64,000 nucleotides of DNA from Bugula neritina (Eukaryota; Animalia; Bryozoa). The notes under the pieces were generated by a model. The model did no database searches, was not told where the DNA came from, and saw only the letters and a program-made list of their open reading frames with translations. Shown here one piece after another: positions 21,801 to 43,894 of the stretch. The DNA lies in the NCBI GenBank assembly GCA_964035545.1, contig OZ037765.1, positions 14,332,698 through 14,396,697 of the forward strand, in the 5' to 3' direction. Within the stretch, counting starts at the first letter, position 1, and each line of letters opens with the position of its first letter. A program made the translations under genes and the position numbers.

Positions 21801-24543
21801 ACCAACTCAACAAAAATATTTGAAAAAATTCGAAATTGAATAATCGCAGGGCACTGTATTTTCATTGGTTGGGATCACCTATTATGTTAAAAATTTAACT
21901 ATCTACGTGTACATTTCGGCCATTTAAAAATGTGAGCCAACATTAATATGACATTTAATATTAATGTATACATTTTATACAAAGTAAATATTTGCCCACC
22001 AAATGAAAATTTGTGTTTGCACACATACCCGAGGTGTATCATTGGTCCTTCCGGCCCAACAGGTAATCCGCTGCCAACAGACAGACAGCAGGAAATGAAT
22101 TTTATAACTAATGTCTTTACATTGAAAATATGACGAACTTGAGTGCCATTTAGAAAGCATATTAGTTCAGGTATACCGGATCCAGCTGCTGATGGTCTCA
22201 AATACTGTAAAACAATCATGGCAGGCTACTAGTCTATAACAATGCAAACCGCACCCTCTGTATCATATATACTTGACAATTTAATTATGAAACATTAATT
22301 TCAGTTCAATTAGAAAGACAAGCTTATTATACAAAGCATATAACCTGAACTAAATTTTATATATATTATGCAAATTCGTATGTTAATTACTACAATTATA
22401 CTCATGAAAAAACAGGCTTTATTACTGAGTGACAAACAATAACATGAGAATAGACACTAAATGTATTTTAATGACATGTTATTATTACATATATTATAAA
22501 CAAAACATCAAGTAATATTTACTATGGAAAATCTTACCACAACAAACACAGTACCAAAAAGTAAGAATAAAGTTGAAAAACCCACACACCATCCCCATGC
22601 AAGCAGCAAGTTATCAACCTACAATGAAATGAGGGTCATACAACACAGTTGTATTATTCAAGTAGGATTAACCTTTATATTATAAAGAAAATTTTTTTAA
22701 AAATAAACTTTATAAACACTTACTGCTAAATATTCTGAAGCTTTATTTATTCGTATATCTGTTAGCAATTCAATGGTTTGATGCAATAAAAAACCAATAA
22801 AACCCACAACAAAACCAATTAAACCCATCATAACCCATAGGTCCCAGTCTAGCCTGCAAAAATTATAAATATTTTTGAGATTTTACAACTACCATAATTT
22901 GTTACACTACCATCTATCTTCACATTACCTCTATACACCATTGACATAAAAATTAAAATAAAAGTTACAGAACAATAATTAGAAAATTACATAATCAATG
23001 ATAGTAGGGTCATTTTACTTAATTTAGTGCACACTTGATATCGCTAGTTTTTAGCCATTTTTCACAATGTGACTGTTAATTTATAAGGGTTTTTTGCGCT
23101 AAACCAATAAAATATTGATAAATACAACTACATAATCAAGATTATTTACTCATTTTGCTTGATTTCCTATGTTTTATCCTAACTTTTTTAGTAAATTAGG
23201 ATATGCAGACTGTGGGGAAAAACCATCATGGTCCGTAAATACATTTTTAGCTTATATAACAACGACATTGCAATTTGATAATGCAGGATCCCCTCCAAGC
23301 CTTTTATGTTATGCATAGTTAGAATCAGCACATAAAATTACCCCATATAGTAAATTGTCATGAATTTTGAGCAAAATTTAATTTTTGGTCCTAACTTATT
23401 GATGTGCAGGTACTAAATAAAGTAAAATGACACAGCATTACAAATTGCAAAGCAAATCTAATGCTCAAACAAATGATAAAGTTATTGAAAATAATTCAGC
23501 AGTTAAAGTTGGTTAAGTTATTACCAATAATGCTTTGATTTTATAACTGCTCTAAATTGCAGATTTAATGGAAAAAATTAGATCTGTACTCCTATAAATT
23601 ATTATTCAACATTTGATGACCTTCAATACAAAACATTTCCAGGGAACATAAATATAGCTACAGGAAGTGGAAGGTGTTAAAAATCAACTGAATAAGCTGC
23701 TCAACAAACCTGGATGGTTGTCTTTTTATCCAATTTTTATAAACTTCACTGTGAGAGGGAAGATAATCTTGACTCTCATAAGTGCGCAATGTTTCTTTTT
23801 CCTCAGATGTATATTTGTGATTTGTAAATGTACTCTCAAAATCACGACCCTATAACAGCAAGTACCTTATATAATAGAAATTTAAAGTACAAGTGGCATC
23901 TCCTATTAGTTGCAACATCATAACATAATGCTTTAGTGTAATAACTTTCTTTGACTTGAGGCTCCTCTAGTAAATGACTGGCAACATCTTTCCAATTTCT
24001 ACAACCATTTATTACGAAAACAAAGTAATATGCCGATGGTTATAGTTGTTTGGGGATATGTATTAGCAAAGTGAGAAACTCTGCTCACTATCTTTGAGAA
24101 ATGGCGGCATAAAGCATTAAGTCGCATAAATTTTTGTGGCGAAGTAGTAAACTTATGAAAGATAAAATTTCAGAGAAATGAAACTAAGCTTCAGAACATA
24201 GATATTGCCAGATTTACATCTACCAACAAGCACTGGAAAACAATTATTCAAGCTCCAACAGACTATGTTTTAAAAATACCTTTGCAAAGAAAGGCATCTC
24301 TTTAGCATCATCATGATAATGAATTGCATCATCTTCAGGAGGTTGGAAAGCAACACCATATTTTGAAAGGCGTGAAGGCCTGTGCCTAAGAGAAATAGAT
24401 TGACTAGACAAAGTTAGTGGTGTTTGAGTATCATCTACAGTCCTCTTAGGTGCCTCTGAAGGAATTTCTGTCATCCGCAAGGCAGAACTTCCTGTGAAAT
24501 CCACAGATTCCCTCTCTAATTCACTAGCACCTTGTACCTCCAT
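9811..24543 (-). CDS. CLC-family chloride transporter (ClC-6/7-related, antiporter-type residues, C-terminal CBS pair), ~927 aa, 17 coding exons
   Basis: Exons with GT-AG sites and matching phases: 24280-24543, 23710-23849, 22724-22853, 22538-22618, 22029-22204, 20905-20997, 20236-20323, 19281-19436, 18543-18737, 18128-18216, 16877-16983, 16529-16700, 16258-16432, 12373-12542, 11860-12036, 11272-11461, 9811-10191 (2784 nt in total). Motifs: [59 protein letters not shown]. Confidence 0.93.
13455..15990 (+). mobile_element. Degenerate RTE-like non-LTR retrotransposon (APE endonuclease + RT), antisense in a CLC intron
   Basis: Frameshifted fragments with endonuclease motifs ([16 protein letters not shown]) and RT motifs ([34 protein letters not shown]). 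Many stops; ends approximate. Confidence 0.9.
16060..16195 (+). repeat. Degenerate (CAC/TAC)n trinucleotide tract
   Basis: Runs such as ctaccaccgccacc and actaccactacc directly after the LINE. Confidence 0.6.
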
Positions 24544-24693
24544 AGATCGTAGCCTCTTTACAAACTCATCTCAAAATGAATTAGTTCCTGTTCCTTGTAC
24601 TTTGTGCACAATTCTTGCACTAAAAAATTCTAACAGAAAAAACTGTCAATAATTGTGTAACTAAAATTTACCAATTTGTCCATTTATAAGTTA

Positions 24694-24697
<4 letters not shown>

Positions 24698-24752
<55 letters not shown>

Positions 24753-24855
24753 AGTGTGTGTGCGAGTGTGTGTGTGCGAGTGTGTGTGCGAGTGTGTGTG
24801 TGCGAGTGTGTGTGTGCGAGTGTGTGTGTGTGTGCGAGTGTGTGTGCGAGTGTGA
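24698..24855. repeat. (TG)n microsatellite grading into (TG)nCGAG compound repeat
   Basis: Visible directly. Confidence 0.95.
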
Positions 24856-26149
24856 GCATTAAATACTGTAATAAACTATGTAGTCAAACTCAAAAACTTA
24901 ATGATAAGAGTCAACACATCAGTTTAATAATAAAATAATGGTAGGTTTAGAAATTGTGTAAAAACATCCTTGGCTACATAATTTTTTTTAGATGTAACCT
25001 AAAAGCAGAAAAAATTCAATATAAATTGAAACAAATACATAAAGGTCTTGAAATTAAATTTACTCTTTTGTTAACTGGTAAAAAAGTAAACTAGATGTGC
25101 TTATAAAATATTAAATACAACTTTAAATAGGAATAAACATTAACAAGTGATAATTCTTTGTACACCAACTCGTAGCTTTATACCAACTGTCTTTAACTTT
25201 CAATATAATGATGATTTCTAGTACTACATTAACCACCCAAACTCCATGTTGATGTTTATTACTTATGTAATAACTATTTTTATTTATTAATACAATTAAA
25301 TAATTATAATTACTACCATCAGTTATGATATCAATATAATTATCGATATGGTGATGATTGTATTTTTACTTCAATTGGTGTCAATTTGCCTGCTTCTTTA
25401 GTGTCAATACTTATAGATCATAGTTGACGCAAATAATATTTAAAATAAAATTACACTTCAGTTTAGACAACATCATCATCTACTCTTAGTGCTTTTAGTA
25501 ATTGGCATATGCCATACTCATTGGGGTTGCTGCTAGTGTTACACTTAGTTTTTTTTTACTGTAAGTGTTATACCTTCAGTCTCATGTCACTAAAAGTAAA
25601 CGAGGCGTTCACATTGACATATAATTTTACCACGAGCTCTGACAAAATAAATCTTAAACCACATAGTAATACTAATAGTAGTATCATAGTACTAGTTGAC
25701 ATAGCATTACCAGTATCACTCAGACTGATAGTCATAGTGATAGTCAGTATCACAATCATAATGATACTGATAGACTTCACCCTAACAACATGAATATCTT
25801 CAACAGTCACTCTAAGTTTAATTCACAAATTTAGTTTCACTGAGTGATTAACGGTCACATTGTCAATTTGATTTTACATTTCATCAGGTCATTAGAATTC
25901 GTCATTAAATTTCGACTTTCACTTTGATTTAGTTATTAACTTAAAGTTAAAGTGAGTAACATTATCATTATGACTATGATAATGATTACCATGTGATTGA
26001 AAATGACGTGGTGATGAGCACTAATTTTAAATTACTATTGCTTTTTACTTCAAGCTCAACATTTAAATAATTACTTCAATTTTATCTACTTCTACTTCTC
26101 GTAACTACTCAACAGTAAACTAGTTCTTCTACTTTGACAGTGACAGCGA

Positions 26150-26560: not shown

Positions 26561-27109
26561 CACTGTCCTTAACAATTTTGCTCACATGAAATATTGTAAT
26601 GGTTAGAAGAAGTATACCCTCCCTCCGGTACCCTCTGCTAAACATGACTATAGATTATGGTGAAACTAACGTCAAGGGCGACAACTCCGCAAACCCTTGC
26701 CGCATTTCTATGCGGTGCCCTATTAGTAACTACGAATGACACCGCCGGAACCCTGTATTATCCAATCAGGATCCACTCTGTATATATAAGCAATGCCTTC
26801 CGGCGCCCACAGCAGTCTTGTGGGGTAGTAGTAGATAACTAGTTAACTACATTTACCGCTCTACGCTTTATACTTATGTTGTTTTTTTTTCATTGTATTT
26901 GTGATTGTTTTCATTGTACGTAATTAATTATAATACAATTATTCATCAAACATTCAACTAACTCGGTTGCTTCTATAACCTTGCAAGTAGAGATGCAGTA
27001 AATACCAGCGCACAATAATACCCAAATCAGTAGTGCATAAAACTACAACAGTGGTGGCAGCGGTGGGATAATTGTGCGTCAATGCAACTGCTATTGGGAT
27101 AATAAAGAT

Positions 27110-28070
27110 TAAGATGGCAGCACCCAGCGATGGAGTCCCGCCATGGGAGAAGAACCTGCGCAACCTCCACGACAAGATGAAGGTGAGCCCGCAAATTGAA
27201 TTGTTTTGGAAAACTTAGTGCCACGGGGCGAGGAGGCTCACAAGAAACTACCTGACTACAGGTACCGCCTGATGGCCCCTTTTTTTGCTGGCAATGAGAA
27301 CATGGAATAATTCATTCAAGAGTTCGATGGCGTGGTAGCCGTCACCCAGTGGCCACTCCGTGTGGCCCTGTTGAAATTGCGGCTGGCTTTGCCAGATAAA
27401 GCCAAACCCTATGGGTTAGGACGTGACGTCAACAGTATCTTTGCTGCATTACGGGCTCGTTTCGGCATTTCTACTAGAAACACCTGAGTCCACTTGCAAT
27501 GGTTGCGGCGCGGCACTTCTTTGCAAGAACATGCCGCCACAGTTAAACGGTTAGCGCAAATTGCGCATAGTGACTTGTCACTCGTTAACCGTGAGCAGTA
27601 CACCTTTGACGCATTTGTGCAGTCGGTGAATGACTTAGGGCTCCATTACCAGTTTCTAGCGAGAAGAGTCGCGACGGTTAAAGATGAACTGCGTGAAGGT
27701 GAGGCTTATCTGTTGGCTACACAGTGGCCGTGCAGGGTCCTGTCAGGTCGAAGCGGAGTTGGCAACTACTCAAGGCAAGACTGAGACGGCGACCCGCGTA
27801 GCTGTCACTACCGCCAAGTCTTCGAGCGCCTCTAAGGTCCCGTAAGTGAACGACATGGTAGCGCAACAGGTCAAGGCGCTCACGCAGTCTCCAGCGGCGA
27901 GACCCGCTAACAGACCATTGAGGTCGAGGGCGAGGCCGCCGAGGAAACGGGCTATCACCTGTCGGGAGAAAGGTAGCCGCGGGCACCTCCACAGGGAGTA
28001 CCCCTCAGCGCAGAGGGAGTTGAACTCTTGCGGCCCGCAGGAGCTTTCGCCAGCTCTGGGCCAGAGATAA
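27110..28070 (+). pseudogene. Gypsy gag remnant, left arm
   Basis: LQEHAATVKRLAQIAHSDL...FVQSVNDLGLH matches the gag at 42672-43463. Degenerate knuckle TCREKGSRGHLHREYP; stops and frameshifts present. Confidence 0.85.
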
Positions 28071-28490
28071 AACTTCCCTCGCGGGGGGAGCCGTCAGCAG
28101 TCCGTACGGATGTGATGGGCAGCCACGCTGGAGTGGCAAGTGCCAAGAAGGACAGGCAAGCTGTACGGTCAGCCTGCCTCCCTCACTGTGCCACTCTAAA
28201 ACCGCCTTGGTGGGTTGCAGACAGGTTTTCGAGGTGGCGGAGACATTTCACCAGACGCTAGGTCTTGTCTCCCCTCGTCATCAGACTCTGACTCTCGCAA
28301 CCTGCCAAAACGGTTCTGGGGTGGCACAGTGAGGGTAGCAGGCTGGCCATACGGCTTGCCTGTCCTTTTTGGCACTTACCACTCTGGCAAGGGCGCCCGC
28401 CGCGTCTGTACGGACTGCTGACAGCTCCTCCACGGTGGGAGTCTTATCCACGGCCCGCGGTTGACGGAAACACCCGTGGGCTGTGTGAGC

Positions 28491-29410
28491 TTAACTCTCC
28501 CCGCGCCAAGAGGCACTCCTTGCAGAGGTATCTGCGACTGCTACACATTCCCAACAGGTGGCAGTCTGTCGCTGTGTCGGCTCCACCCCTGACCTTTGGG
28601 GTCTTTGGTTGGGGCCCACCGCAGTCGACTGTGCCAGCGTCGCTACCCGTTTCTCCACCATCTTAGTCATACGAATGACCTCAGAGTCTGGTGGGGGACC
28701 GGCAGCAGCCGCTGCTACGTGAGCTGGGGGTTTAGGTTTGCAGTGATCTTCTGATAGATTTACAGCGACCTGATGGGAGCTCACGTGGCTTCTGTGTAGC
28801 TGAGTAGCCAACAGATAAGCCTCACCTTCACGCAGTGCATCTTCCACTGTCGCTACTCCCCTTGCCAGAAACTGGTGATGGAGACCTAGGTCATTCACCG
28901 ACTGCACAAAGGTGTACCGCTCATGGTTAACGAGCGACAGGTCACTATGCGCAATTTGCACTAACCGTTTGACTGTGGCGGCATGTTCTTGCAGGAGAGT
29001 GCGCGGGTCGCACCGCAACCTTTGCAAGCGAACTCGGGCGTCTATAGCAGAGATGCCAAATCCCATCTGTAGTGCAGCGAAAATGCTGTTGACGTTGGGT
29101 CCTAACCCATAGGGTTTGGCTTTATCTGTCAACGCCAGCCGCAATTGCAACAGGGCCACACGCGGTGGCCACTGGGTGACGTCTATCATGTCACTAAACT
29201 CCTGGATAGCTTGTTTCATGTCCTCATTGCCAGTAAAGACGGGGGGGGGCCTTCAGGTGGTACCTGTAGTCAGGTAGTTTCCTGTGAGCCTCCTTGCCTC
29301 GTGGCACTGGGTTTTCCAGCACAATTTGATTTGCGGGCTCACCTTCATCTTGTCGTGGAGGTTGCGCAGGTTCTTCTCCCATGGTGGAGACTCCATCGCC
29401 GGGTGCCGCC
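28491..29410 (-). pseudogene. Gypsy gag remnant, right arm
   Basis: 242-aa ORF containing QWPPRVALLQLRLALTDKAKPYGLG...TCWEC, plus a frameshifted N-terminal part (YRYHLKAPP). Confidence 0.88.
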
Positions 29411-31115
29411 ATCTTAATCCTTCTTATTATCCAGATAGTAGTTGCATTGACACACAATTATCCTACTGCTGCCACCACTGTTGTAGTTTTATGCACTATT
29501 GGTTTGGGTATTATTGTGGGCTGGTATTTGCTGCATATCTACTTGCGAGGTTATAGAAGTGACCGAGCTAGTTGAGCGTTTTATAAATAACTGTATTATC
29601 ATCGATTACATACGATGAAAACAATCACAAATACAACGAGTAAAACAACATAAGTATAAACGTGACATGTAGTCAACTAGTTATCTACTGCTACTGCCAA
29701 GACTGCTGTGGAAGGCATTGTTCATATACACAGAGTGACTCCTGATTAGATGACACAGGGTTCCGGCGGTGTCCTCCGTAGTTACGGGCACCGCATAGAC
29801 ATACGGCAGGGTTTGTGGAGTTGTCGTCCTTAACGTTAGTTTCACCATAATCTATAGTCATGTTTAGCAGGGGGCGCTGGGGGGTATACTTCCCCCAACC
29901 ATTACAATATAGTAGTTGAACTGTCTTTAACAAAATATTTCTAACATTTTGTTACCAATTTCGGAACTGCAGATCAATTAATAACCAATACAAATTTAGC
30001 TAATACAAGAATAACTAATAATGGTGGTGCAATGTTCAGTAACAAAGATTGGTGTTATAGTTAAGTTCTCTGAAGCAGTAAGCTATTATTGGGAGTTGGC
30101 AAGTAAATAGACCCTAGTTTGCCTTTTATGCGACTTAAATTAGAGATTGCCGAGTCACGTGTTAATATATAAGTAGAAAAATATCATTAGGTATTTCATA
30201 CACTAGCAGTGCTGTGTTTCAATAGAGGTGCGTATTTATCATCACAGACTGAATGAGAGTGAATAACAGAAAGTGCTGCGTTTATAATAATATTCTAAAA
30301 AGATAGCTTTTTTGTAGCAGCCAAAATCACTATCTCTCAGCCAATAACACAACAGAGAAAAACTTAATGTAGCTAACATAGCTGTGAGAATACAATAAAA
30401 GCTGTATTGATTCAACAGAAGCTTTCCAAGCTCATGTAATGTCCTAACAAGCAGTGACTTTTCTCTTAGATCAAATGAATTGTAGCTTTAAGCTAAGTGA
30501 TCAAAAGTGTTATAAGTGCTACAGTTAAATCCCCAATTTTCTGTGGTTTCCTAAAAATTCCCTCAGTAGAAAAGGACAACAAATTTTTCCAGGATTTTCT
30601 GGGACATTTTAGTTGGATGTGGAATGACTTGAAGGAGTCGTACAGTTGAAATATATACTTTTCTTTGTGGTTTAACATGAATATCCGCAAATATTAATTA
30701 AGAATGTTCCACTGGATTAACCTCCTGTTGATGAGGCATGTATGCGGCACTGGTAATTTCTCTTTCTAGCTTATAAGTTCCCCAATAGCTCTTTGTTTTA
30801 ATTAGAAGAAGTTGAAAACAAACTATATTAGCCTATCTAGTATTGCAAAGCTAGCCTTTTTCATCAATACTTTCCTATCTGAGAGTCACAAGGTTTTGAA
30901 CAAAATTAATTGGGCTGCATTAGGTCTGCCTGGCTACAGTTTGGGCATCTTTGAGATATACTAAATTTGCAAAAAATAGGATCATATTATTTTTGCAATA
31001 AGTAGATTTCTAAGTTTTCAGTTTATTGGCAATTTTAGTATGCATAGAAATATTCCAGTCATGCAAAATGCTACACAAAATTTGTTTAGAGATTCAGAAT
31101 TATGACAATTAACAA

Positions 31116-34114
31116 CTATGGTAGCATACGAATAGCCCCATCAAGTCTAATGACCTCTCCGTTCATCATTGGATTTTCTATAACACTTTGAACAAGATGA
31201 GCAAATTCGTCAGGGTATCCTAATCGTTTAGGAAAAGGAACAGTATCTGCCAAGAATTTACGAACTTTTTCAGGAAGAGATGCCATAAGTGGGGTGTCAA
31301 AAAGCCCTGCAAGTAAATTAAATGCTAAATGTGACTAAAGTATTCAAATTATACATTTTTCCAGTTTTATGACAAGAGAAGAATGCATTGATCAAATTTA
31401 AAAGTAGCAAAGCGAGGACGTTCTGGAAAGACCAGCATAGTTTTCTCCACTGTGACGATTGCAAATAGTTTTTATATATATGCAATTTATTAATTAAAAC
31501 TAAGAATGAGCAGACTAAAATGCTTTTGACACAACTTTTGATCATAAAACTACCCACCTAGACCAATAAGCTACAAAAAAATATGTTAACCAGTATCAGA
31601 TTATATGCATGTTACAAAATTGATGTAGAAGCATAGATTATGACTCCTAAACCAGAAATGTGAACTTTTCAGAGAAATATTGGACGGTTTTCAAAATTCT
31701 AGCAACTGAACTAACACTAAAAAAACAATTTTGCTCAATAAAAATGGTTTCATTGATATTTAGCCGATGAAGAGGCATAGTCACACAACTTACCTGGTGC
31801 AATTGTGTTCACTCTGATACCAGCTTGAGCAAGATCACGAGCAATTGGTAACGTCATTCCAACTATAGCTCCTTTACTAGCAGAATAAGCAGCTTGACCA
31901 CGCTGCCCGTCAAAAGCCGCAACACTAGCAGTGTTTACAATGACCCCTTTATTTCCATCAGGTCCAGGTTCATTTGCAGATAGCAACTTGCAAGAGAGTC
32001 TGATGACATTGAATGTCCCAATTACATTTACCTGTAAAACACCAGCACATGGGTTAACTAATTTTAACTCATTATCACGTGTTGCTTTTAGATACATCTT
32101 TTTAGGTATTAACACCGACACCGAAATACTATCATCTTCAACTGTAGATAAGGTATTTTTCAAATATTTATATTTACTGCAGTATTTCAACTACACATTT
32201 GTGAAAAAAAACTGATTGATAAAATTTCCAGCTGCTTGCCAGTTTAACAACTACACTTGTTTCAGTTACATAGGAAAGGTTAGATGGATGAATTTAATCT
32301 TTATAAATTTCAGTGCATAGACTATAGAGCATTTAACAAAAGCATCTCTACTAAGAAGTACCTTAAACCAACTTAAAACTGCTTATATTGAGGGCCTATT
32401 GGGAGATACAAATTTTCCTCAATGTCATTTAACGAAAATAGCATAAATAAAATAAATGATCAATAGGTTCAACTAGTTATATAAATTAAATTATAATGAG
32501 TTGTAGATTTAAAAACAAGATATTGTTGATATAATATACTTCATGATTATATGCCAAACATCTTTTTCCACATACCATTTGTACATTTGTGAAACTTTCT
32601 AATTCATGAGGACGATGTTTACTAAAGTTGTATGTCTGAAAGGCAACTGCTGTGCCAGCACAATTAACTACTGCATTTAGTTTGCCAAACCTTGATGCAG
32701 CTACATCAAGAGCAGCATTGACGTCTGATTCAGATGTTACCTGTAACATCAGAAAACTGCCTCATTAATAGCTTACAGTCATTTTTCACAAAAACAGATG
32801 TGAAGTTCGACATGATGAACACATCATGTTAAATAATGTACGAAAATAATGTTAAAACGACTCATACATCAGTAGGACAGAAAATGGCATTCTTCCCCAA
32901 CTCACGAGCTGCATTTGCACCATCTGATGTAGGTAGGTCACAGAGAACAGCCATACCTCCTTGATCAATAATTCTGTCAAAAATCAATAATGCTTCATTT
33001 TTAATATTAATAGAGAATATATGACGCTCCTCTGTTATATCAACAAAATGCCGTGCATATCAATTGCAGCCGGCACTTCTTAATGACGAAATACTTGACT
33101 TTGCACCATAATCCTACCTTTTAGCTGTTGCTCTACCCAAACCAGAAGCTGCACCAGTGACCAGGCCAACCAATCCCTAAACATTAACACATATTCCAAT
33201 TTTTAAAAGCTTTTAAATTAAAAATGTTAATAATTTTCAGAAGGATATATCAAGATGGCAGTAGACCCTTTTCAGAAATCTCTCTAGGGGCATTTAAATT
33301 TTGAAGTTGTCTCTTCCCGCTTGAGAGCAGGGGGCCCTCCATGATTCCATGATAGAAGTAAGAATTTAAGGTTTGTATGAAGACTGTTGCTAGCATAAGT
33401 TTCTTCTTTTCTGAGATAAATATTTTGGCATAAGCACACATATTAGCAGCTCCAGAAATTCAACAATATTTTTTCTTTATGAATTAAAAAAAACTCAGAA
33501 GAGAAGAAACTTATGCTAGCAATAGTCTTCATTCACACAAACCTTAAATTTCTGCTGATTTTATGTGCTTTCTCTACATCATGAAGGTTCCCCTGCTCCT
33601 GGGTGGGAGGAGACAACTTCAAAATATAAATGCCACAATAGGAACATCTGTAAAGGGTCTATTACTTAGTAATAACAAAATAATATAGGTACTAACAACA
33701 TGATGTTTATTGATACAGCAATGGTCAGTGAGACCTGAAGCACTTGCATTGTGAACACTACTAGCTCTAAAAATTAAAACTGGCAAAATGAAGTAATATT
33801 ATTTTACAAGATAATGTACTTCTTTGCATTATTTTAACCACTTGTTAGAAACAATCAGTGTTTATTAATGTGTAGCTTGATATAAAATAAGCATGCTCTT
33901 ATTTCATCAGCAATAAACATTGAATAATAGTAACAACAGTATGTATTTAAGTTTTATATGACATAAATGCTACGATGATTGTTGTGCACAAGTGTCTAAA
34001 AATCTGCATTAGAAAAATTTCTTTTTGGCAAAAAAGGCTATTTAATAAGGAGAAACAATTTATTACCATGTTCTAAATATGCATTCAGTTTTATACCTTG
34101 AGACCAGATACCAT
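31116..34114 (-). CDS. HSD17B10: 3-hydroxyacyl-CoA dehydrogenase type-2 / 17-beta-HSD10 (SDR family), 258 aa, 6 coding exons
   Basis: Exons 34097-34114 (MVSGLK), 33118-33176, 32868-32973, 32576-32740, 31794-32031, 31116-31306 (777 nt). Motifs: [68 protein letters not shown]. Confidence 0.95.
33259..33666. mobile_element. Fold-back / MITE-like inverted repeat in an HSD17B10 intron
   Basis: About 160-bp arms (33259-33417 and ~33494-33666) are imperfect reverse complements, e.g. gctagcataagtttcttc / gaagaaacttatgctagc and ttttgaagttgtctc / gagacaacttcaaaa. No TSD identified. Confidence 0.75.
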
Positions 34115-34624
34115 GTTGATATATGATTTTAACCAGAGCAAAAGAGCATTCACTATATTATTCTTTCATTCACTTCAACACCTTCTTAAATTTTCTTTTA
34201 AATTTTAGCAGATTTCTGTAACTGAGATCTAAAATATTAAAGTTCAGATGTCTAAATGCAATGACCGTATACAACAAGAAACATTATTGATAATAATTGA
34301 GTTACAGTGACAAGAAAATGGCTAATAATGTTGGTAAACATGAGCTGTTAAATGCATATGTGATTACATATTACATACACATCAACTTTAAATTTCTAAG
34401 TTTAACATTTACTTTTAGTTAATGCCACTATCGCCATCACTAAATGAATCCTATATCAGTATAATAACAGTATATTATACTTATAGTATTAGCATTACTA
34501 TTACCATACTATTACTATCACTATAAGTATAAGTGTAACTATAAGCAAACTAATAGTATACCACAACTATTAGTAATACTAATAGTATTACTTTTAGATT
34601 TAGTAAACTAATAGTAATAGTATT

Positions 34625-35544
34625 CATCATCATCATCATTAGCTGTCCTTCGTGTCCGAAGATGACTTCCGGTGAATCATGGTCCTCCATTTACATCTGT
34701 CTTTGCTGAGAGATTGCCAGCTACCAATAGGGATCTTCAGGTCTTTTAGATTGCGTTTAACGGTATCTTTGAATCTCAGTCGCGGCCTGCCAACACCACG
34801 GGTGCCTTCTTTCAGTTGTGAATAGAGAATTTGCTTAGGTAATCTAGAGTTATCCATTCGATGCACATGACCAGCCCATCTCAGGTTTTTGTGAATGAGT
34901 AGTTCGTACATGCTGGGTAGATTTGCCTGTGCTAGAGTCTCCTCATTCGAGATGAAATCCCACCACTTCACGTTCAAGATCTGGCGTAGATGTCTCATCA
35001 TATAGGTGTTGAATTTGTGAGCGGCTATCCTGTATACAGGCCAGGCCTCCGCTCCATAGAGCAGAGAGGACAGGACAATGGCTCTGTACACTGTACACTT
35101 GGTCTTGAATGACAGATCCTTATTGTACCACACTTTGGTCTTTAGTCTGCCGAATGAGATTGAAGCATTGGACATCCTTGTATGAATCTCTTCATCCATC
35201 TTGTTGTTGCACATCACTGTAGACCCAAGATATTTAAACCTATTAACGTTGGCAAGGTCTTCATTATCTATGCAGATACTGTCACCACTGTCATGGGCTC
35301 CAGGTGCCGGTTGGTAGAGCGTTTCCGTTTTCTTGATATTGATCTTCAGACCAAAAGCTTTGGAAGCTCTGGCGAATCTATTGACTAATTCCTGTGCATC
35401 GCCATGGCTGTGTGCAACGAAGGCAGTGTCGTCAGCAAACATGAGTTCTCTAACCAATACTTTTTGTGTTCTTGTTGTTGACTTGTATTGGTTCACATTG
35501 AACAGATCAGCTCCAGGTCTACTTTGAATCCAGACGCCTTTATC
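34625..35544 (-). mobile_element. 5'-truncated RTE-clade LINE with uninterrupted RT C-terminal ORF, (TGA)n tail and 8-bp TSD ATAGTATT
   Basis: ORF 34639-35496 contains VRELMFADD, FGLKINIKKT, FKYLGS, LLYGAEAW, LRWAGHV. Tail tgatgatgatg follows the stop. ATAGTATT at 34617-34624 and 35545-35552. Confidence 0.93.
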
Positions 35545-35995: not shown

Positions 35996-36472
35996 TGTTG
36001 TCTTTTTGTGAACTAATGTCGGTGGGGTTTTATTGTATGCTGAATTACTGGCTCATAACCTAGCTACGAAGTTTGAGAGAGAACCGAGGAATGGTAGCGT
36101 TAAAAGTAATGTCTATATTTTAGGTCTAATTATACAACAGTAAAAGATACAAGTAATTACAAAAGAGTACACATCAAAGCAGTTACACAATATACTAGTC
36201 TATCTAATAGTTAACCTCAGACTGAGGCTGGGTGCCGGAAGGCGCTACTTATAACTGAAGGGTTTGATCTGATTGGCCAGTGGGGTTCCGGTGGTGGTGC
36301 CCGTAATGAGTGGTGCGGTGCCGCATCTCTATGCGGCATTTTACAATGTTAGCCTGGGTGCAGTATGTAGAGTTATCGTCTCTTGGAACTTTATAATACA
36401 ATATACTGCGTCTTTTACTACAAGTGTTAGTGACATAGTGGTTGGGGAACAATACTTCCCACAGCCATTACA
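35996..36472 (-). repeat. 3' LTR
   Basis: Direct repeat of 43485-43894 with several indels; adjacent to the PPT. Confidence 0.93.
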
Positions 36473-36844
36473 ACTCCCCCCCTCCACCAGCAGAAAGCCT
36501 ACTTTCTGATACACCATACAAACAAACAGAAAGAAAAGAAAAGTATTAGACATTAAAAAAAGTAGCAAAGGTAAATATCTAAAAAAATTCATTAATAAAA
36601 CTTTACAAAATATATAATTGCGAGAAACTCTATTTTGGGAGAATGGGCACCACAGCCACAACAAACTCACGTACGCATCCAGTGTATTTATGAAAAATGG
36701 AATCAAGAAAGAAAATGAAACAACACACAAAATTTATAAAACAGAAGAAAAATATAAGACCTTTAGAGAGATAATAAAAGCACCTGGAAGAATGAGGCCA
36801 AGACTTCCCTAGCTATGGAGTACGTCGAGCGAAAGATGACTAGG

Positions 36845-38167
36845 CTACCGAGACTGAGGAGCCTCGCACTTCAGCCGAGACAAGGAATCTTTGAGGGTAC
36901 TCAGCTCACTGGTAACAGCCAAGACCTGGGGGGTTAGCTGGCTTAGCTTATTTTCCAGCTTGTGCATACGCTGCTCCAGGTCAGCATCGAGTTGGTCATG
37001 GTGTGGACTGATGTGAAAGAGGGTGAAAGGGAGGCGTGCCTCTTCCTTTTCTTGGCCGGTTTCACAGCAGAACGAGGGGTTGAGGAAGGTGCAGGAGTAG
37101 AAGTAGTAGTTGGAGCAGGGGTGGCAGTTGGAGTAGCCGAGTCCAGGCGACGTACTATGACCCGAGGCGACTGGGACCTCTGGCCAGATGAAGTAGAATG
37201 AGTGGGCTGAGAAGATGAGCCATAGTTGATAACATTTGGTAACGGTCCCTCCGTAATGGCCCGAAGGGCAGGGAACCCTTTAGAGAGGCGAGCCAGTTTG
37301 CTCAGGTCTTTTACCAGATGAAGGGTAACGGCAAAGAACTCTGGGAAGGTACTCTAGTCAACTTCAAATAAAAAGCGTATGTTACACTTCGTGGTCTGTT
37401 GATGGTGCAACACATAGTCACAGTTATAACTGTATTCACTGCATGCACAAAATGTCGTGACATAGTGCTGCGGTGCGTGCACTCATAGACGGTGTGTTGT
37501 GAATATTTGATGACATAAATGGCAGGCTGTATTATCGGGGTCTCCCGTGGCCCTCATGATGCTGAAGCTGGGGGATCAGAGTCGTCCAGTCGACCCGGTG
37601 ATAGAGCACTGCAGGTAGACGACCATCTTTCAGTCTAGGAGGACTGTCCCGTGGAGGGGGAGGCTGGGTCTCAAGAGCCGGGTCGTCATCCCAGACTATC
37701 TCTGGTGACGACGGAATGCCCACTGTGGCAGGCCAAGAAGAATCTAAAAGAGCAGGATAAGGAATAGATCTACATGGATCTTTACATCCTAACTTACACA
37801 AATCTCGGCTTTCATCAGCCTAAGAATCACTCCCTTATAAGGCACTCGTGAGACAGCTGACAACTGCTTCCAGTTCCAGGTCTAATAGATCGTCTGTCAT
37901 CGCCATATTCTCGTCTTTATTAGCAGTTGCCAAAGTCCCCAGCAAGTCTAACTCAACTAGATTTATTGAGTCAGACTGAACTGACATCAGATCAGTTTCC
38001 ATAATATCAGGAATAATTGGTTTGAGGGACTTACTTCGAAAACCAGTATTTGAATTCATACTTGAATAGTTCAAGGCAATAGTATCATTAGTAGGCAGTG
38101 CATGTCCAACTTTGACTACTGTCGCATATGAAAAGGATAAGCAGCGTGGTTGTTGCAAGTAGCGCAA
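36845..38167 (-). pseudogene. Degenerate accessory ORF in the env position of the Gypsy element: C2H2 finger, Ser/Thr/Pro linker, NLS, leucine zipper
   Basis: Manual translation gives CHLCHQIFTTHRL*VHAPQH (37465-37524), PAKKRKR (37039-37059, same frame) and LEQRMHKLENKLSQLTPQVLAVTSELSTLKDSLSRL (36872-36979, after a frameshift). Confidence 0.7.
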
Positions 38168-38499
38168 GTGTTATGCTACTGGCGGATGAATTCTACCCAC
38201 TACTACGCCTTCGCAAAGAGAACACTTTCTCCTCTGATCGCAAAACTCCCACGCCGCCTGCAGCAATCCACCGCGGTGACTTCTGCATGACCATATTGTT
38301 GTTTTGCAGTTACATACAAAGTCCCGCAAATAGGGCGGTAGCTGCCGCGACCGCTGTTTTTTTTAAAGCCAACGGTGGCTTCCCTATCGAGGTCATGGAT
38401 GCCGGAGGGGGATTGCAGAGATGGGAGGCCTGCAAGGACTCCTTACTCATCAATAGACCCTCTTCTTCGAAAGAGGACCTCACCTCCTGAGTCAGTCCT

Positions 38500-41400
38500 G
38501 GCTCAGGGGTGGCAGTGGGGGAGGCTGGTTTAGAGAGTTTGGCCTCTCCTCTGGTGAAGGAGGCCTGGGTTCTCTAAACCTGTGTACCGGCCTAGGTATG
38601 ATCACCTCATACTCAGGCCCACGTCACATCCGGCTGCCTCCTGGGCTCAAGCAACGGGGGTGCATCTCCCACCGCATCGGGCTAGCCCAATACAGTTTTA
38701 AGCGAGCCTCGTTCTGGGTGGAAACCTGTCTCGAGCGCTCGACATTTTATGTATGATTGGGCAGAGCCTCGACTACCAAGTAGGGCCCCACGAACTTGGG
38801 CTGTAACTAAGCCGACTGTCCGCAGCGCCTACGATAGTTAACCATCTAGACCCAGCCCTCCACCTGATAGAGTGGAGGCTTCACGGAGTCCTCCCTGTGC
38901 ATTTGCCACTGCTTCTTACAATGCATGTTGTGAGCGGCCCGCATGCGTTCCACCAGTTTCCCCACGTACTCATGTACAGAGTTTTCAGGGTCGGGAGCAT
39001 GGTAAGTTAGGTGGTTGGGAACGCAGGTATCTCGATCTAGCATCAGGAAGTCTCAGACGTGCTCTTGCGAGGCGTACTGCGGTATGCAAGCACAACCTGC
39101 GAGAGCACTGTATCCCATTCCTCCTGACCTCGGTCGAGGAGCACACTCTGGAGAGCATCACCCAGCATGTGGTTGTTACGTTTGACAACCCCATAGCTTT
39201 GCGGGTGATACGGGGTGGTCCTGCTTTGATTCAACTCCCCTCCCCCCAGAGCTGGCAGAGGTTACCCGTTAGCTAAGACTGGAACTGAGCATCCTGGTTC
39301 GAATGGATCTGCTCCGACAAACTCAAATAACAGAACAAATTTTGGTTCAGGACCCGGGCCACAGTTAAAGCCGATACATCTGGGATAGTCGGGGCATCGG
39401 CCCACCGAGTAAAGTGGTCCGTGAGCACCAAGATCCAGTTGCTACCTTTGGGGGTCAGGGGCATGGGACCTATCAGGTCAACAGCCACTACCTGCCAAGG
39501 CCTCCCGGCGTACAGCTGTCTTCGCCCCGCACTGTCTGGGGGCAACCATGCTTACTGGCCGGGCAGATTTTGCAATGTCTCACTTTGAGCCTTACATCAT
39601 GCCCAATCTCCGGCCAATGCAATTGGGGTTGTAACTTTTTGACCATTCGCTGAACTCCTGCGTGAGCCTCCTTGTGTGCGTCCCAGATCAACTCGCGACG
39701 GATGGCAAAGGAGCAGACCACTTGCTCACATTTGGGATGGCTGCCCGGGGCAGCAAACGTGATAGTCAAAAGACCATCCCATTAATCCGAAGTGAATCCA
39801 AGCGGCGACAGAACATCTGGAATTCAGTGCACTGCTGCCACTGTTTCTCTTCACTATGTTGCTTCCCCCCTTTCTTAGCCCTATAAATTTTGGCCACTAG
39901 CCCGGGTAGGGTTTCCAGGAGTTTACGTAGCTCACTGAAATTTTCAGCCAAGACTGGGTTAGCGGGGAAGGTGCTTACAGCGTCAATGGGAGAGTCGAGC
40001 ATAAGTTAGCCATGCTCCCATCTGTAATCACCTTCCCAATATTTAAGCACTGTCTGCACCCCCTTTCAGATTGCCGGCTTAGCCCATCTGCATTGTCGTG
40101 TTTCTTTCCGGGTCGATGTTTGATCCGGTAGAAAAACTCGGCCAAGATTTCAAGCCACCGTGCAACCTGACTAGAGGGTTCAGCTCTCTTGCACAACCAC
40201 ATCAGCGAGGCGTGCTCCGCCCGCAGCTGGAACATCTTACCATAGAGAAAAGGTCGAAAATGTTTCACCGCCTTAATTACTGCCAAGAGTTCCTTCCTGG
40301 TGGTAAAGTAATTTCGCTGGGCGACAGAGAGAGCCTTGCTATAGTAACCGACGACCACCTCTCGACCATCCTAGACCTGTGGCAGTACTGCAACCACATT
40401 GTGGTTGCTGGCGTCCGTGTCCAGAATGTACTCCTTAGCGGGATCGGGGTATGCCAGGACGGGCACTCTTATCAAGCAACCCTTGAGGCGGTCGAACGCC
40501 TGATGTTCAGCCTGGGTCCACTGCCAGTAGACCTCCTTTGCAGTTAGCCAATTTAGCGGCTGCGCTATCCCCACAAAGTATGGTATGTACTGCCGATAAT
40601 ACACTACCGACCCCTGGAAAGCCCGTAGCCCGATCAAATCCTGGGGAGTAGCCCAGTCTTTCATTGCTAGTACCTTTTCGGGGTCAGTCGCTACCCCGTT
40701 GCAGCCAACAACATGGCCCAGGTACCTAAACTCCGGCTGTAACAGAGTGCACTTGGAGAGTTTCAGCTTCAGACCAGCACCTCTGAGCCTATCGAAAACC
40801 TTCAGCAGACGACTGATGTGAGTCGTGAAGTCTGGAGAGATCAACGATGACATCACCGAGGTAAATGAGCAAGGTCTTCCAGTAGAGCCCAGTAGAGCTC
40901 CACGAGTGTCTGGATGGTGGCCGAGGATGAAGTCAATCCAAACAGTAACACCTTCCTTTTCCAGAGCCAATCCTGTGTTATAAACGCAGCCTTAACCTGT
41001 GCATCGGGACTCAGGGGGACCTACCAGTACCCGCTAAGCAAGTCTAACGTACTGAAGTACTTGCTACTGGCCAGGGCATCTAGTGACTCATCGATATGGA
41101 GAAGGTGGTACGTGTCCTGTATGGTCACGCTATTTATCTTGCGGTAATCTACACAGAACGACCAACCTCCGTCCTTCCGGACCAGAACAACCGACGAGCT
41201 CCACGCACTATGTGCTGGCTCTATTGGGTTGCGGTCCAAAAAGTCGCGGACTTGTCAGCTCACCTTCTCCGGCCCCAACCCGTGCATAGGTTGCCGGATC
41301 GGGGCCGTCCCGTAGTCAGGGGGATTTCGTGACTGACAGCCACAGCCAAGCTCACATCATGGTCCTCACTGCTGAACACGTCCTTGTACTCACGAAGTAA

Positions 41401-42200
41401 CTGCACCATTACCAGGCGTTCTCGGTTAATTGTGCAGCCATGACATGCGCCCTCGTACAAGTCGACGACATGGTACGAGACCGGTCTGTGACTGCTCATG
41501 ATGGGTTTCCTGGGGTGCCCCGTTGTCTCACCCAACAGCAACCCTACATCTCCTTCTTGAATGGAGTGAAACTTGCCCACCATGGACCCAGCTGGCAGCT
41601 CTACCGGTTCCGTGAAAGGGTTTACACACTGCATCAAGATCTCCCCTTGCATATCTAGCCGGATCAGCCTATTTGCAAATTGGATCCTTTCGTGAGCCCT
41701 TCCACGACTTCAAGTTCGGAGATCCGCCTACAATTCACCTTGCAGTGAATAATAGCACATGAACGCCAAGGTATTGTGCAGTTGCGCACTACCTGGACGC
41801 CCCCCACCAGTAGACGGCCAAACTTGTCAACACAAGCAAACTCTCGCCTGGCCATAGCCACCGCCGACTTCCTAAAGTCGATATGGCATCCCGAGAATGG
41901 CATCCTCTTTGAGCTGGCTGACGATAAACGTCAGCTCAATGATGCCTCAGAAGAGAATACACTACCTGTTCGCCAACTGCCATGTTCCCCATGGTACAGC
42001 TCCAGGCCGGCCCGGTCTCTAGCGCTGAGTATGTCAAAGAGTCGGCAACTTAAGAGGTTCGTAGTGCACCCTGAATCCAACAGGAAAGTAACAGCTTTGC
42101 TAGCTATCTTGCCAAGGAAGAAGTAGCTGCCACCATAGGGTAACAGACAACACTTCTTTAGCATTGAGTTAGGGCTGGACCTGCGTCCGATGACCACGAG
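38500..42200 (-). pseudogene. Gypsy pol remnants (aspartic protease, RT, RNase H, integrase)
   Basis: Protease FLLDSGC. RT: FCVDYRKIN, YFSTLDLLSGYW, and YLGD in place of YLDD (~40852-40863). RNase H: YILDTDASN, KELLAVI. Integrase: HKEAHAG...CKIC, VAVDLIGP, IHSNQ, TPYHPQS, GPY. Many frameshifts. Confidence 0.93.
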
Positions 42201-42489
42201 GCAATCTCCGAGGTTGCAGAGGCAATGCTGCGGACTCTAGGTCCTGCCTCACCTCGTCACCAGACTATGCCTCTTGTAGTTCGTCGAAACGGTTTCGGAG
42301 TGGCCAAGTAGGGGTAGCAGGCCTGCTGTACGGCTTGCTTGCCTGTCCTTCTTGGAACCTGCCACTCTGTTGGGAGCACCTTGGGCGTCCTTGTGGACTG
42401 TGGGCGAGTCCCTCGCCAATGGAGATTTACTTCTGGCCCGCGGTTGGCGGGTAAGCCCGCGGGCCGAGGTGGTTTAACTTTCTCCGCAA

Positions 42490-43463
42490 AAACTGCGGGC
42501 ACTACCTGCGGAGATGCCAGCGGCTACCGCAAAACCAACACACGGTAGCCCGCCCTTGAGTGGGTTGTGTCCCCGACCTCTTGGGTCTTTGGGTAAGGCC
42601 AGCCATCTGGGAATGCGCCAGTGCTGCCACCAGTTTTCTGATCACGTCTGTCATACGAACGATGTCGGAGGCTATGGAATGACTGGGAGTGGCAGCGGCC
42701 ACATAGCGGTTGGCTCAGGTTCAGAGGTAGCATCCAGTAGCCCCGTTTCAACCTGGCGGGTGCTTACGCGGCTCTTGTGCAGCTGTTTGGCCAACAAGAA
42801 AGCCTCACCATCTCTGAAAGCGTCTTCGACCGTTTTGACTCCAGTCACCAGAAACTGGTGGTGAAGTCCCACGTCATCCAACGACTGCACAAAGGCATCG
42901 AAGGTGTAGTGCTCCCAGTTAGCTGGTGACAATTCGCTATGTGCGATCTGTGCCAACTGTTTCGCCGTAGCAGCATGTTCTTGTAGGAGAGTGCGCTGGT
43001 CGCGCCGCAACCCCTGCAAGCACACTCTGACGCCAATAGCTGAGAGGCCAAATTGGGTTCGTAAAGCATCAAAAATGCTGTCGACATCGGTCCCTAACCC
43101 ATAGAGTTTGGCTTTATCTGTCAACGCCAGCCACAATTGTAAGAGGGCAACCCTAGGTGGCCACTGGGAGACGGTTACAACGTCACCGAACTCTTGGATG
43201 AACTGTTCTACATCCTCGTTACCAGTGAAGACAGGGGCTTTCAGGCGATATCTGTCACCAGAAAACTCCCTGTCGGCCTCCTCGCCCTGCGGTATCAGAT
43301 TTCTATGAACTTCAAGAGTTGCGGGCTCACCTTGGTTAGATTGCAGAGGCTCCGCAGGTCTCTCTCCCTCCGCAGGGTCTCTTTCTCCCTCAGCACCTAC
43401 TGGGCGAGGGTCCCCCATCACGAATCTCTCTCCAACTAAGGTAGTAGTTGCATCGACACACAA
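42490..43463 (-). pseudogene. Gypsy gag (capsid plus CCHC knuckle CWFCGSRWHLRR), frameshifted
   Basis: ORFs 42672-43463 and 42502-42702. Confidence 0.88.
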
Positions 43464-43484
43464 TTATCCCACCGCTGCCACCAC

Positions 43485-43894
43485 TGTTGTAGTTTTGTGA
43501 ACTACTATCAGTGGGCTTTTATTGTATGCTGAATTACGGGCTTTTAACCTAGCTACGAAGTTTGCGTTGAAAGTAATGTCTATATTTTAGGTCTAATTAT
43601 ACAAAAGTAAAAGATACAAGTAATTACAAAAGAGTACACACCAAAGCAGTTACACCATATACTATTCTATCTAATAGTTATCCTCAGACTAAGGCTGGGT
43701 GCCGGAAGGCGCAACTTATAACTGGAGGGTTTGATCTGATTGGCCGGTAGGGTTTCGGTGATGGTGTCCGTAATGAGTAGTGCAGTGCCGCATCTCCATG
43801 CAGCATTTCACAATGTTGGTCTTGGAACTTTATAATATAATATACTGCGTCTTTTACTACAAGTGTTAATGACATACTTCCCACAGCCATTACA
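43485..43894 (-). repeat. 5' LTR
   Basis: TG...CA ends, followed by the PBS; contains CCAATCAG and a TATAA-like box. Confidence 0.93.

Follow-up and report, generated by a model that had tools for sequence, protein, structure and literature searches.

How does a retroelement come to face another of its own family across a single junction, and does the resulting structure do anything for the genome that carries it? This question is raised by positions 26591-29910 of a 64,000-nucleotide stretch of the Bugula neritina genome (contig OZ037765.1, forward-strand positions 14,332,698 to 14,396,697; the whole stretch is hereafter called the window). Here, a 3.3-kb imperfect palindrome, or fold-back, is formed by two inward-pointing halves, each made of a long terminal repeat (LTR), a primer-binding site (PBS) for tRNA-Leu-AAG and gag. 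Our analysis indicates that the fold-back is most likely what remains, in neutral decay, of an old inverted double insertion that was collapsed by a microhomology deletion; there is also a small chance that it may be, or may have been, a source of hairpin RNA.

Structure of the fold-back

The initial annotation, made from the letters of the DNA, had described the locus as an imperfect palindrome whose outer ends are both inward-reading LTR 5' ends (unique 3' region, U3) flanked by ATAT. An inverted-repeat search returned ten blocks with 78-92% complementarity, far above chance, which tile 26591-28218 against 28297-29910, and a blastn comparison of the 3320 bp with their own reverse complement gave 76.8% identity over 3404 columns. 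The left outer end (26591-26604) reads ATAT followed by TGTAATGGTT, while the right outer end (29897-29910) reads AACCATTACA followed by ATAT. Both parts of the description are thus borne out. The limits of the palindrome coincide with the U3 termini, and beyond the two ATAT flanks (26591-26594, a putative target-site copy that recurs in a related taxon described below, and 29907-29910) the flanking DNA lacks similarity. Ends placed at the U3 termini look like those expected of integrase.

The two arms share one layout, namely LTR, one base, PBS and a reading frame at the gag position. Both read TGTAATGG...CTACAACA as LTR, with TG...CA termini followed by the PBS on each side. The left 5' LTR occupies 26595-27050 on the plus strand, with a CCAAT box near 26763 and a TATA-like box near 26783, and the right 5' LTR occupies 29479-29906 on the minus strand, where CCAAT has become CTAAT and 7 bp have been deleted; both features are intact in the relative. 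The left PBS (27052-27069, plus strand), TGGTGGCAGCGGTGGGAT, is complementary at all 18 positions to the tRNA-Leu(AAG) 3' end. A tRNA 3' end matching it occurs at five genomic sites, and ARAGORN called tRNA-Leu(AAG) at all three of those examined, which lie in two loci. The right PBS (29460-29477, minus strand) has two mismatches to the same tRNA 3' end. The earlier claim that a tRNA-Leu PBS precedes gag in each arm therefore holds.

The left-arm gag remnant (27114-28219, plus strand) shows homology to the gag regions of the family and is interrupted by stop codons, and the right-arm remnant (28213-29412, minus strand) has its longest open stretch at 28491-29219 (242 aa). A Pfam search of the gag open reading frames (ORFs) and of the ORF downstream of gag returned no family, even at E=10. 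The arm gag is homologous to the gag-position region of a Ty3/gypsy element at 35996-43894 of the window, and 113 homologous ORFs were found in the database, among them P0025, which has RT_RNaseH domains. In the element at 35996-43894 (minus strand), which is 67-70% related, pol has the order reverse transcriptase, RNase H, integrase zinc domain and rve; downstream of gag in the arms' own family, motif inspection found just a decayed protease-like motif. The genome contains dozens of old copies of this family together with solo LTRs, at 68-90% identity.

Junction and orthologous locus

We examined the centre of the palindrome with a 281-bp junction probe. In the 216-Mb genome this probe matched end to end at its own locus only, and the other family copies matched it just from probe position 94-96 onward, which means that the right arm extends to about 28213 and that the junction is unique. 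Compared with longer copies of the family, the left arm ends in ...GGGTTGCA, where the natural continuation would be AAAGTCAGAG, and the right arm, read in its own sense, ends in ...CTGTCTGCAACC, with the natural continuation GCTGAGCGCAGG. On the plus strand the heptamer GGTTGCA stands at both natural arm ends and can be assigned to either arm; it forms a 7-bp microhomology at 28213-28219 that is conserved in the related taxon. In element coordinates the right arm is 83 bp longer than the left, and 28220-28296 (77 bp) is accordingly right-arm gag (minus strand) without a left partner rather than a foreign spacer; it would form the loop of a hairpin. The family itself holds a short inverted repeat at the breakpoint, GTTGCA ... 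GCAAC, with the two parts about 80 bp apart.

Judged by motif inspection of a longer family copy, the ends of the two arms lie some 100-190 bp short of a decayed retropepsin motif. In the copy L037, motif inspection placed a decayed retropepsin-like motif (LLDSE..., ILMMPFL) about 106 bp past the right-arm end, which suggests that both arms stop just upstream of the protease. It had been proposed that the arms end before the protease within some 70 bp of each other and join near 28218 without a spacer; these proposals agree with our results, the measured offset being 83 bp. In a metagenome collection from which records of this genome may be omitted, neither the exact junction pattern, nor a gag-based locus search, nor an exact look-up of the 242-aa ORF gave a match.

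Among the homologues of the gag ORF in the right arm, the best (P0001, 83% amino acid identity) lies on a 10.9-kb JGI contig of a related taxon. This contig aligned with window positions 33112-25686 at 89.7% identity over 7554 columns, and the alignment was unbroken across an HSD17B10-like gene, the right flank, the entire fold-back and the left flank. The related taxon has ATAT followed by TGTAATGG at both outer ends, and its junction (GGTTGCAGA...) is identical. Since the same structure stands on an independently assembled contig, it is no assembly artefact, a candidate explanation that arms just 77% identical to each other also speak against; the shared ends and junction show that the fold-back predates the split of the two taxa. 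Since the split each arm has gained about 2.6-4.1% on each lineage, whereas the differences between the arms that were already fixed before it amount to 5.2% in the LTR, 4.1% in PBS-gag and 25% in a variable patch of distal gag. Judged from these pre-split differences and post-split gains, the origin of the fold-back would be, roughly, at most twice as old as the split.

A search for more distant orthologues with an HSD17B10-like exon found none with the locus, the other matches coming from distant taxa. In the same relative, the exon also matched three Logan contigs, 1.5-2.7 kb long, none of which includes the fold-back, and the next-nearest HSD17B10 homologues reached at most 87% identity over part of the query and lay in distant taxa or on short contigs. 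The Ty3/gypsy element at 35996-43894 (7.9 kb) is absent from the related taxon's contig (compared with L064:1238-1471). It is bounded by ATAC on both sides, a 4-bp target-site duplication (TSD), against a single ATAC in the relative, and its LTRs are about 92% identical when a 50-bp indel and gaps are excluded. The alignment at the insertion point is only 79% identical and runs through a (TAATAC)n-like repeat and a local inverted repeat. This element looks like a post-split insertion, 6 kb away, into a chromosome that already held the fold-back.

Two source lineages and the origin of the fold-back

Whether the arms are copies of each other or come from different elements was addressed with trees that combined the two arms with 28 copies of the family (L033-L060), leaving out loci from the left-arm search. 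In the whole-arm tree the right arm fell into a clade with 100/100 support that excludes the left arm, and the approximately unbiased (AU) test rejected sisterhood (p=7e-4). This signal is unevenly distributed. The LTR tree placed both arm LTRs in one clade of eight copies (sister relation p=0.07) and the PBS-gag tree gave no resolution (p=0.42), whereas the distal gag tree put the arms in two separate, strongly supported clades, with an AU p of 3e-8 for the sister relation. A sliding comparison confined the difference to arm positions of about 1130-1530, where the arms are 54-68% identical, against 83-92% on either side. The tree of this patch alone is split into an A-type and a B-type by a branch of 0.32 with 100/100 support; the right arm carries the A-type (28381-28780, minus strand), grouping with L034 and L033, and the left arm the B-type (27725-28125, plus strand), grouping with L037, L042, L048 and L057.

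Two of these copies, L057 and L034, have the LTR clade of the arms together with a B-type and an A-type patch, respectively. Because each mosaic type is thus carried independently, both configurations must have existed as transposing lineages, and the shuffling of A- and B-type patches against LTR clades implies frequent recombination between co-existing lineages. The patch difference predates the split of the two taxa. Copying of one strand would have started with identical arms, so a patch from two clades disfavours it and indicates that the arms derive from different source elements and are not copies of each other. The LTR distance between the arms (Kimura two-parameter, K2P, 0.135) is comparable with the values of 0.116 and 0.25 obtained between the paired LTRs of old copies elsewhere. 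Outside the patch, most sites of pre-split difference have both states in other copies as well, but the groupings at these sites are inconsistent and nearly all of the differences are transitions, so that homoplasy swamps the signal.

The account that we favour on balance is that a tail-to-tail pair of related elements arose by insertion, probably at one ATAT, and that a microhomology deletion then removed the centre. The order of events may be reconstructed as follows. Two closely related lineages of one Ty3/gypsy family would have inserted separately, tail-to-tail and probably into one and the same palindromic ATAT, and so created a long inverted repeat. One deletion would then have taken the pol region and the 3' LTR of each element, along with whatever lay between the two, fusing left gag to right gag at the 7-bp GGTTGCA. 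The GTTGCA ... GCAAC repeat of the family gives a plus-strand direct repeat at nearly mirror-image positions in the two copies, an arrangement that would suit either slippage of the replication machinery at a hairpin or end-joining by microhomology once the palindrome had broken at its centre. Near-symmetric breakpoints would be expected from deletion at the base of a hairpin as well as from a central break with two-sided resection, and the heterologous patch beside the new centre would help to stabilise the remnant. Insertions and deletion would all precede the split, to be followed by neutral or faster decay with occasional conversion between the arms.

Nearly precise excision of Tn10 is a stabilising deletion at an inverted repeat. 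The double insertion has a precedent. In the case reported for D. melanogaster, two rover LTR elements stand in an inverted tandem with an ATATAT junction, which is read as a double insertion (McGurk and Barbash 2018, PMC5932611). The two cases share an inverted pair from one LTR family at a palindromic AT-dinucleotide target, the family having a marked preference of target (for ours, ATAT), and differ in that here the centre, both 3' halves and any TSD at the junction are gone, leaving just the 5' ends. Possible routes for the deletion are the centre-break revision of palindromes and microhomology-directed recombination at inverted repeats (PMC3300023). The stabilising central deletions cited in that source likewise have near-symmetric breakpoints, a join at a short repeat and a shorter, asymmetric palindrome as product; those cases are experimental (bacteria, mammalian cells, transgenes), whereas the present one is deduced from a single old junction. 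Inverted terminal repeats are a feature that the fold-back also shares with the DIRS-like retroelements. Members of that group are multi-copy and code for a tyrosine recombinase as well as a reverse transcriptase, whereas the fold-back consists of gag remnants of a Ty3/gypsy family only and is single-copy.

The ATAT flanks themselves contribute little to the choice between one integration and two. Among 12 independent family copies with an intact 5' LTR start, the 5' flank was ATAT in five, TTAT in three, ATGG in three and ACAC in one; ATAT stands on either side of the full copy L035, and TTAT on either side of the solo LTR L051. The family thus makes 4-bp TSDs and prefers ATAT, and with such a preference matching ATAT flanks are no proof of a single integration. 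Two independent insertions would both show ATAT with a chance of about 1 in 6, and an element that entered the ATAT duplicated by an earlier insertion would always leave ATAT on both sides. The caution given with the initial annotation, that ATAT is weak evidence for a TSD, was well placed, ATAT being the commonest 5' flank in the family.

Several points weigh against a double insertion. For elements about 8 kb long, independent random breakpoints would come as close together as 83 bp with a chance of only about 2%, and the model therefore depends on a hairpin-assisted or centre-break deletion, a step that we infer and that lies beyond what the sequence can establish. One integrated cDNA ending in U3 on both sides would be equally expected to give U3 termini flanked by ATAT. 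Outside the patch the sister relation of the arms is not rejected by either the LTR or the PBS-gag tree (the p values of 0.07 and 0.42 given above), the arms share a sub-clade there, and ectopic gene conversion of about 400 bp could mimic an origin from two lineages. Finally, neither an empty site nor an intermediate with two full elements was found, the sole relative found already having the fold-back.

The competing account that deserves most attention, although we think it unlikely, makes the fold-back in one step during reverse transcription. A plus strand of U3-R-U5-PBS-gag (R, repeat; U5, unique 5' region) would stall near the end of gag, its 3' TGCAACC would anneal to GGTTGCA about 80 nt upstream, on itself or on the cDNA of a co-packaged RNA, and copying back to the U3 terminus would give a molecule with two U3 ends that integrated at a single ATAT. 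The 7-nt inverted microhomology, the unpaired centre of about 77 nt and the 83-bp excess of one arm are exactly what such a snap-back predicts, and it also accounts for arms that end precisely at U3 termini between identical flanks. Of the first ten bases of U3 (TGTAATGGTT), seven match the U5 end when that is reverse-complemented (TGTTGTAGTT), and CA-3' stands at both ends; the arm LTRs and PBS-gag parts fall in one sub-clade with similar terminal branch lengths. The difficulty is that self-copying gives identical arms, whereas a 400-bp segment already belonged to two deep clades before the split. To rescue the idea, one needs either heterotypic templates with a switch in trans between plus strands or a later ectopic gene conversion. 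Moreover, no second structure of this kind was seen among the scored family matches, and the matching ATAT weighs little given the preference of the family. A single integration through two U3 ends, which the initial annotation had offered as its alternative, consequently agrees with the ends and flanks and is weakened by the two-lineage arms and the ATAT preference.

Two further explanations can be set aside. Inverted duplication of one truncated element at the DNA level, by fold-back repair or template switching, would also use a short inverted microhomology and leave a short asymmetric centre; together with an assembly error it is very improbable, for the LTR termini mark the exact limits of the inverted homology, with none extending into the flanking DNA, the arms stem from two lineages, and an error in assembly would have produced near-identical arms, not the observed 77%, nor would it agree with the contig of another taxon. 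The DNA-level duplication was rejected on the first two grounds. Hardly any credence is left for a non-autonomous inverted-LTR element that moves as a unit, as had been suggested at first: its integrase-type termini and matching 4-bp flanks at both ends are what one would expect, but the full-length junction occurs at one locus in the 216-Mb genome instead of several sites, and the metagenome collection had no exact match to it. If the double insertion with central deletion stays the preferred reading, the locus is a natural, well-resolved case of a long inverted transposon pair collapsing to a short stable palindrome, offering a junction at base-pair level, evidence for two sources of the arms and a second taxon for dating. 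Annotation and work on palindrome instability would profit from it, although it would not be surprising.

Decay, hairpin capacity and surroundings

We then compared the rates of change between the two taxa. K2P distances were 0.042-0.068 in the flanks, 0.035-0.049 in introns and 0.014-0.024 in the HSD exons, against 0.061-0.067 in the two LTRs, 0.105-0.155 in the gag parts of the arms and 0.106 and 0.110 in the whole arms. The arms thus show no visible constraint and decay at the rate of the non-coding DNA around them or above it. Of the polarised single changes, 146 ran from GC to AT and 68 from AT to GC, and 21% were at CpG; with an insert GC content of 45-52% in surroundings of about 31%, this AT-biased decay fits a GC-rich insert relaxing to the base composition of the genome. 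Most substitutions break the pairing of the arms: in PBS-gag, 109 uncompensated single changes stand against 10 shared ones.

Outside the patch (26595-27724 paired with 28781-29906), 11 sites show the identical change on both arms within one taxon, whereas the control pattern occurs at none (binomial p ~0.006). These sites lie dispersed over the arms, and every one of the changes is a transition. Gene conversion between the arms of palindromes is a known phenomenon, and the shared changes suggest that it went on at a low level after the split. Selection for pairing is conceivable as their cause, and the ratio of 109 to 10 in PBS-gag speaks against it. Constraint or maintained pairing, by which a hairpin locus could be recognised, was accordingly not found, the excess of 11 to 0 fitting gene conversion as well.

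The initial annotation had further proposed that the locus yields a hairpin-forming transcript and acts as a "killer" of related elements. In terms of folding capacity the proposal stands. The predicted fold of the whole locus has a minimum free energy of -2355 kcal/mol, compared with -1100 to -1134 kcal/mol for shuffled sequences; 1332 of its 1429 pairs join arm to arm, 16 helices have at least 21 bp, and nine exact runs of at least 21 nt are common to both arms. By this prediction a single transcript holds an inverted repeat long enough to form double-stranded RNA (dsRNA). Inward-facing promoters had been proposed in both LTRs; the CCAAT and TATA-like boxes of the left LTR are preserved in the two taxa, and the right LTR of this genome has the mutated CTAAT and the 7-bp deletion. 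A second source of transcription might be the HSD17B10-like gene, a member of the short-chain dehydrogenase/reductase family on the minus strand to the right of the fold-back (stop at 31116), which reads towards the fold-back and ends 1.2 kb upstream of it. If transcription ran across the junction, starting in the left LTR or reading through from this gene, the product could fold into a long, mismatched hairpin. This would be a capacity and not a demonstrated function, and the killer role as yet finds no support in arms that are unconstrained.

Could the fold-back nevertheless work, or have worked, as a gene for hairpin RNA whose dsRNA is cut to small RNAs that silence the family in trans? The predicted arm-to-arm fold with its 16 long helices, the left LTR boxes in both taxa, the gene that reads towards the locus, the 11 shared changes against none, and the survival of the fold-back in two taxa would all be in keeping with such a role. 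Nonetheless, we consider it quite doubtful. Between the taxa the arms diverge at or above the rate of the flanks, uncompensated changes outnumber the shared ones, and the latter, all transitions, would equally be produced by gene conversion or by hypermutable sites common to both arms. Only 0-63 exact 21-mers per copy are common to the arms and the other family copies, and each family copy seen is old and broken. The gypsy element at 35996-43894 inserted 6 kb away once the fold-back existed; being 67-70% identical to the arms, it is too diverged for its insertion to say much either way about silencing.

The arms of known hairpin RNA (hpRNA) genes are generally highly complementary and are conserved or co-evolve with their targets, whereas those of the fold-back are 77% identical and have no detectable constraint. 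What the locus has in common with the hpRNA and endogenous small interfering RNA (siRNA) loci of Drosophila (PMC5392987) is a long inverted repeat that might serve as a Dicer-2 substrate. A closer parallel is Mu killer of maize, a partial inverted duplication of MuDR for which hairpin RNA, siRNAs and silencing in trans are proven (PMC3440606). The logic is alike, in that an inverted partial transposon copy including terminal repeats, with kilobase-scale hairpin capacity, adjoins a gene from which it can be read through. However, Mu killer is a duplication of a DNA transposon, and the fold-back is an old, decayed LTR pair from two lineages, known from its sequence. Should junction-spanning transcripts and small RNAs exist, remnants of this kind would become candidate origins of silencing of LTR elements in animals, and the fold-back would bring to their study a dated origin and an orthologue for comparison.

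There is also a slim chance that both minority views are correct at once, namely that a snap-back cDNA with two U3 ends was made from the co-packaged RNAs of two lineages and integrated at one ATAT, and that its product, with arms then perhaps at least about 95% identical, was formerly a hairpin silencer. The weak excess of shared changes may in that event be a trace of the silencing role, and the locus would be an animal LTR-element counterpart of the maize Mu killer.

On the other side of the fold-back lies a CLC channel gene, also on the minus strand, whose first coding ORF ends at 24543; the order and strands of the two neighbouring genes are as originally described. A long microsatellite of the (GT)n / GTGTGC type occupies 24676-24940, directly upstream of this ORF and before the fold-back. 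At 34618-35544, a non-LTR (LINE-type, long interspersed nuclear element) reverse transcriptase has left a fragment whose 285-aa ORF runs on the minus strand; this fragment is missing from the relative's contig, where L064:1660 and L064:1691 correspond to window positions 34617 and 35545.

Elsewhere in the genome, patterns for tail-to-tail and head-to-head double insertions of the family occurred at about the frequency of controls (33 vs 19 and 2 vs 2, respectively). At L053:426-447 (C7:11047442-11047463), 1 kb upstream of a family copy, the stretch CTACTACA-ATAT-TGTTGTAG resembles two U5 ends placed tail-to-tail; LTR homology was undetectable in its surroundings. An inverted arrangement of a different type is found at C3:8336197-8336854, where two internal family fragments lie on opposite strands 147 bp apart (query 966-1168 antisense, then 703-1002 sense). 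Lastly, the copies L045 (C7:8719728-8721356) and L046 (C7:8690347-8691514) are nearly identical, with terminal branches of 0.004-0.02, and lie about 30 kb apart, while the other copies are 10-30% diverged; this pair looks like a recent segmental duplication rather than the result of transposition.

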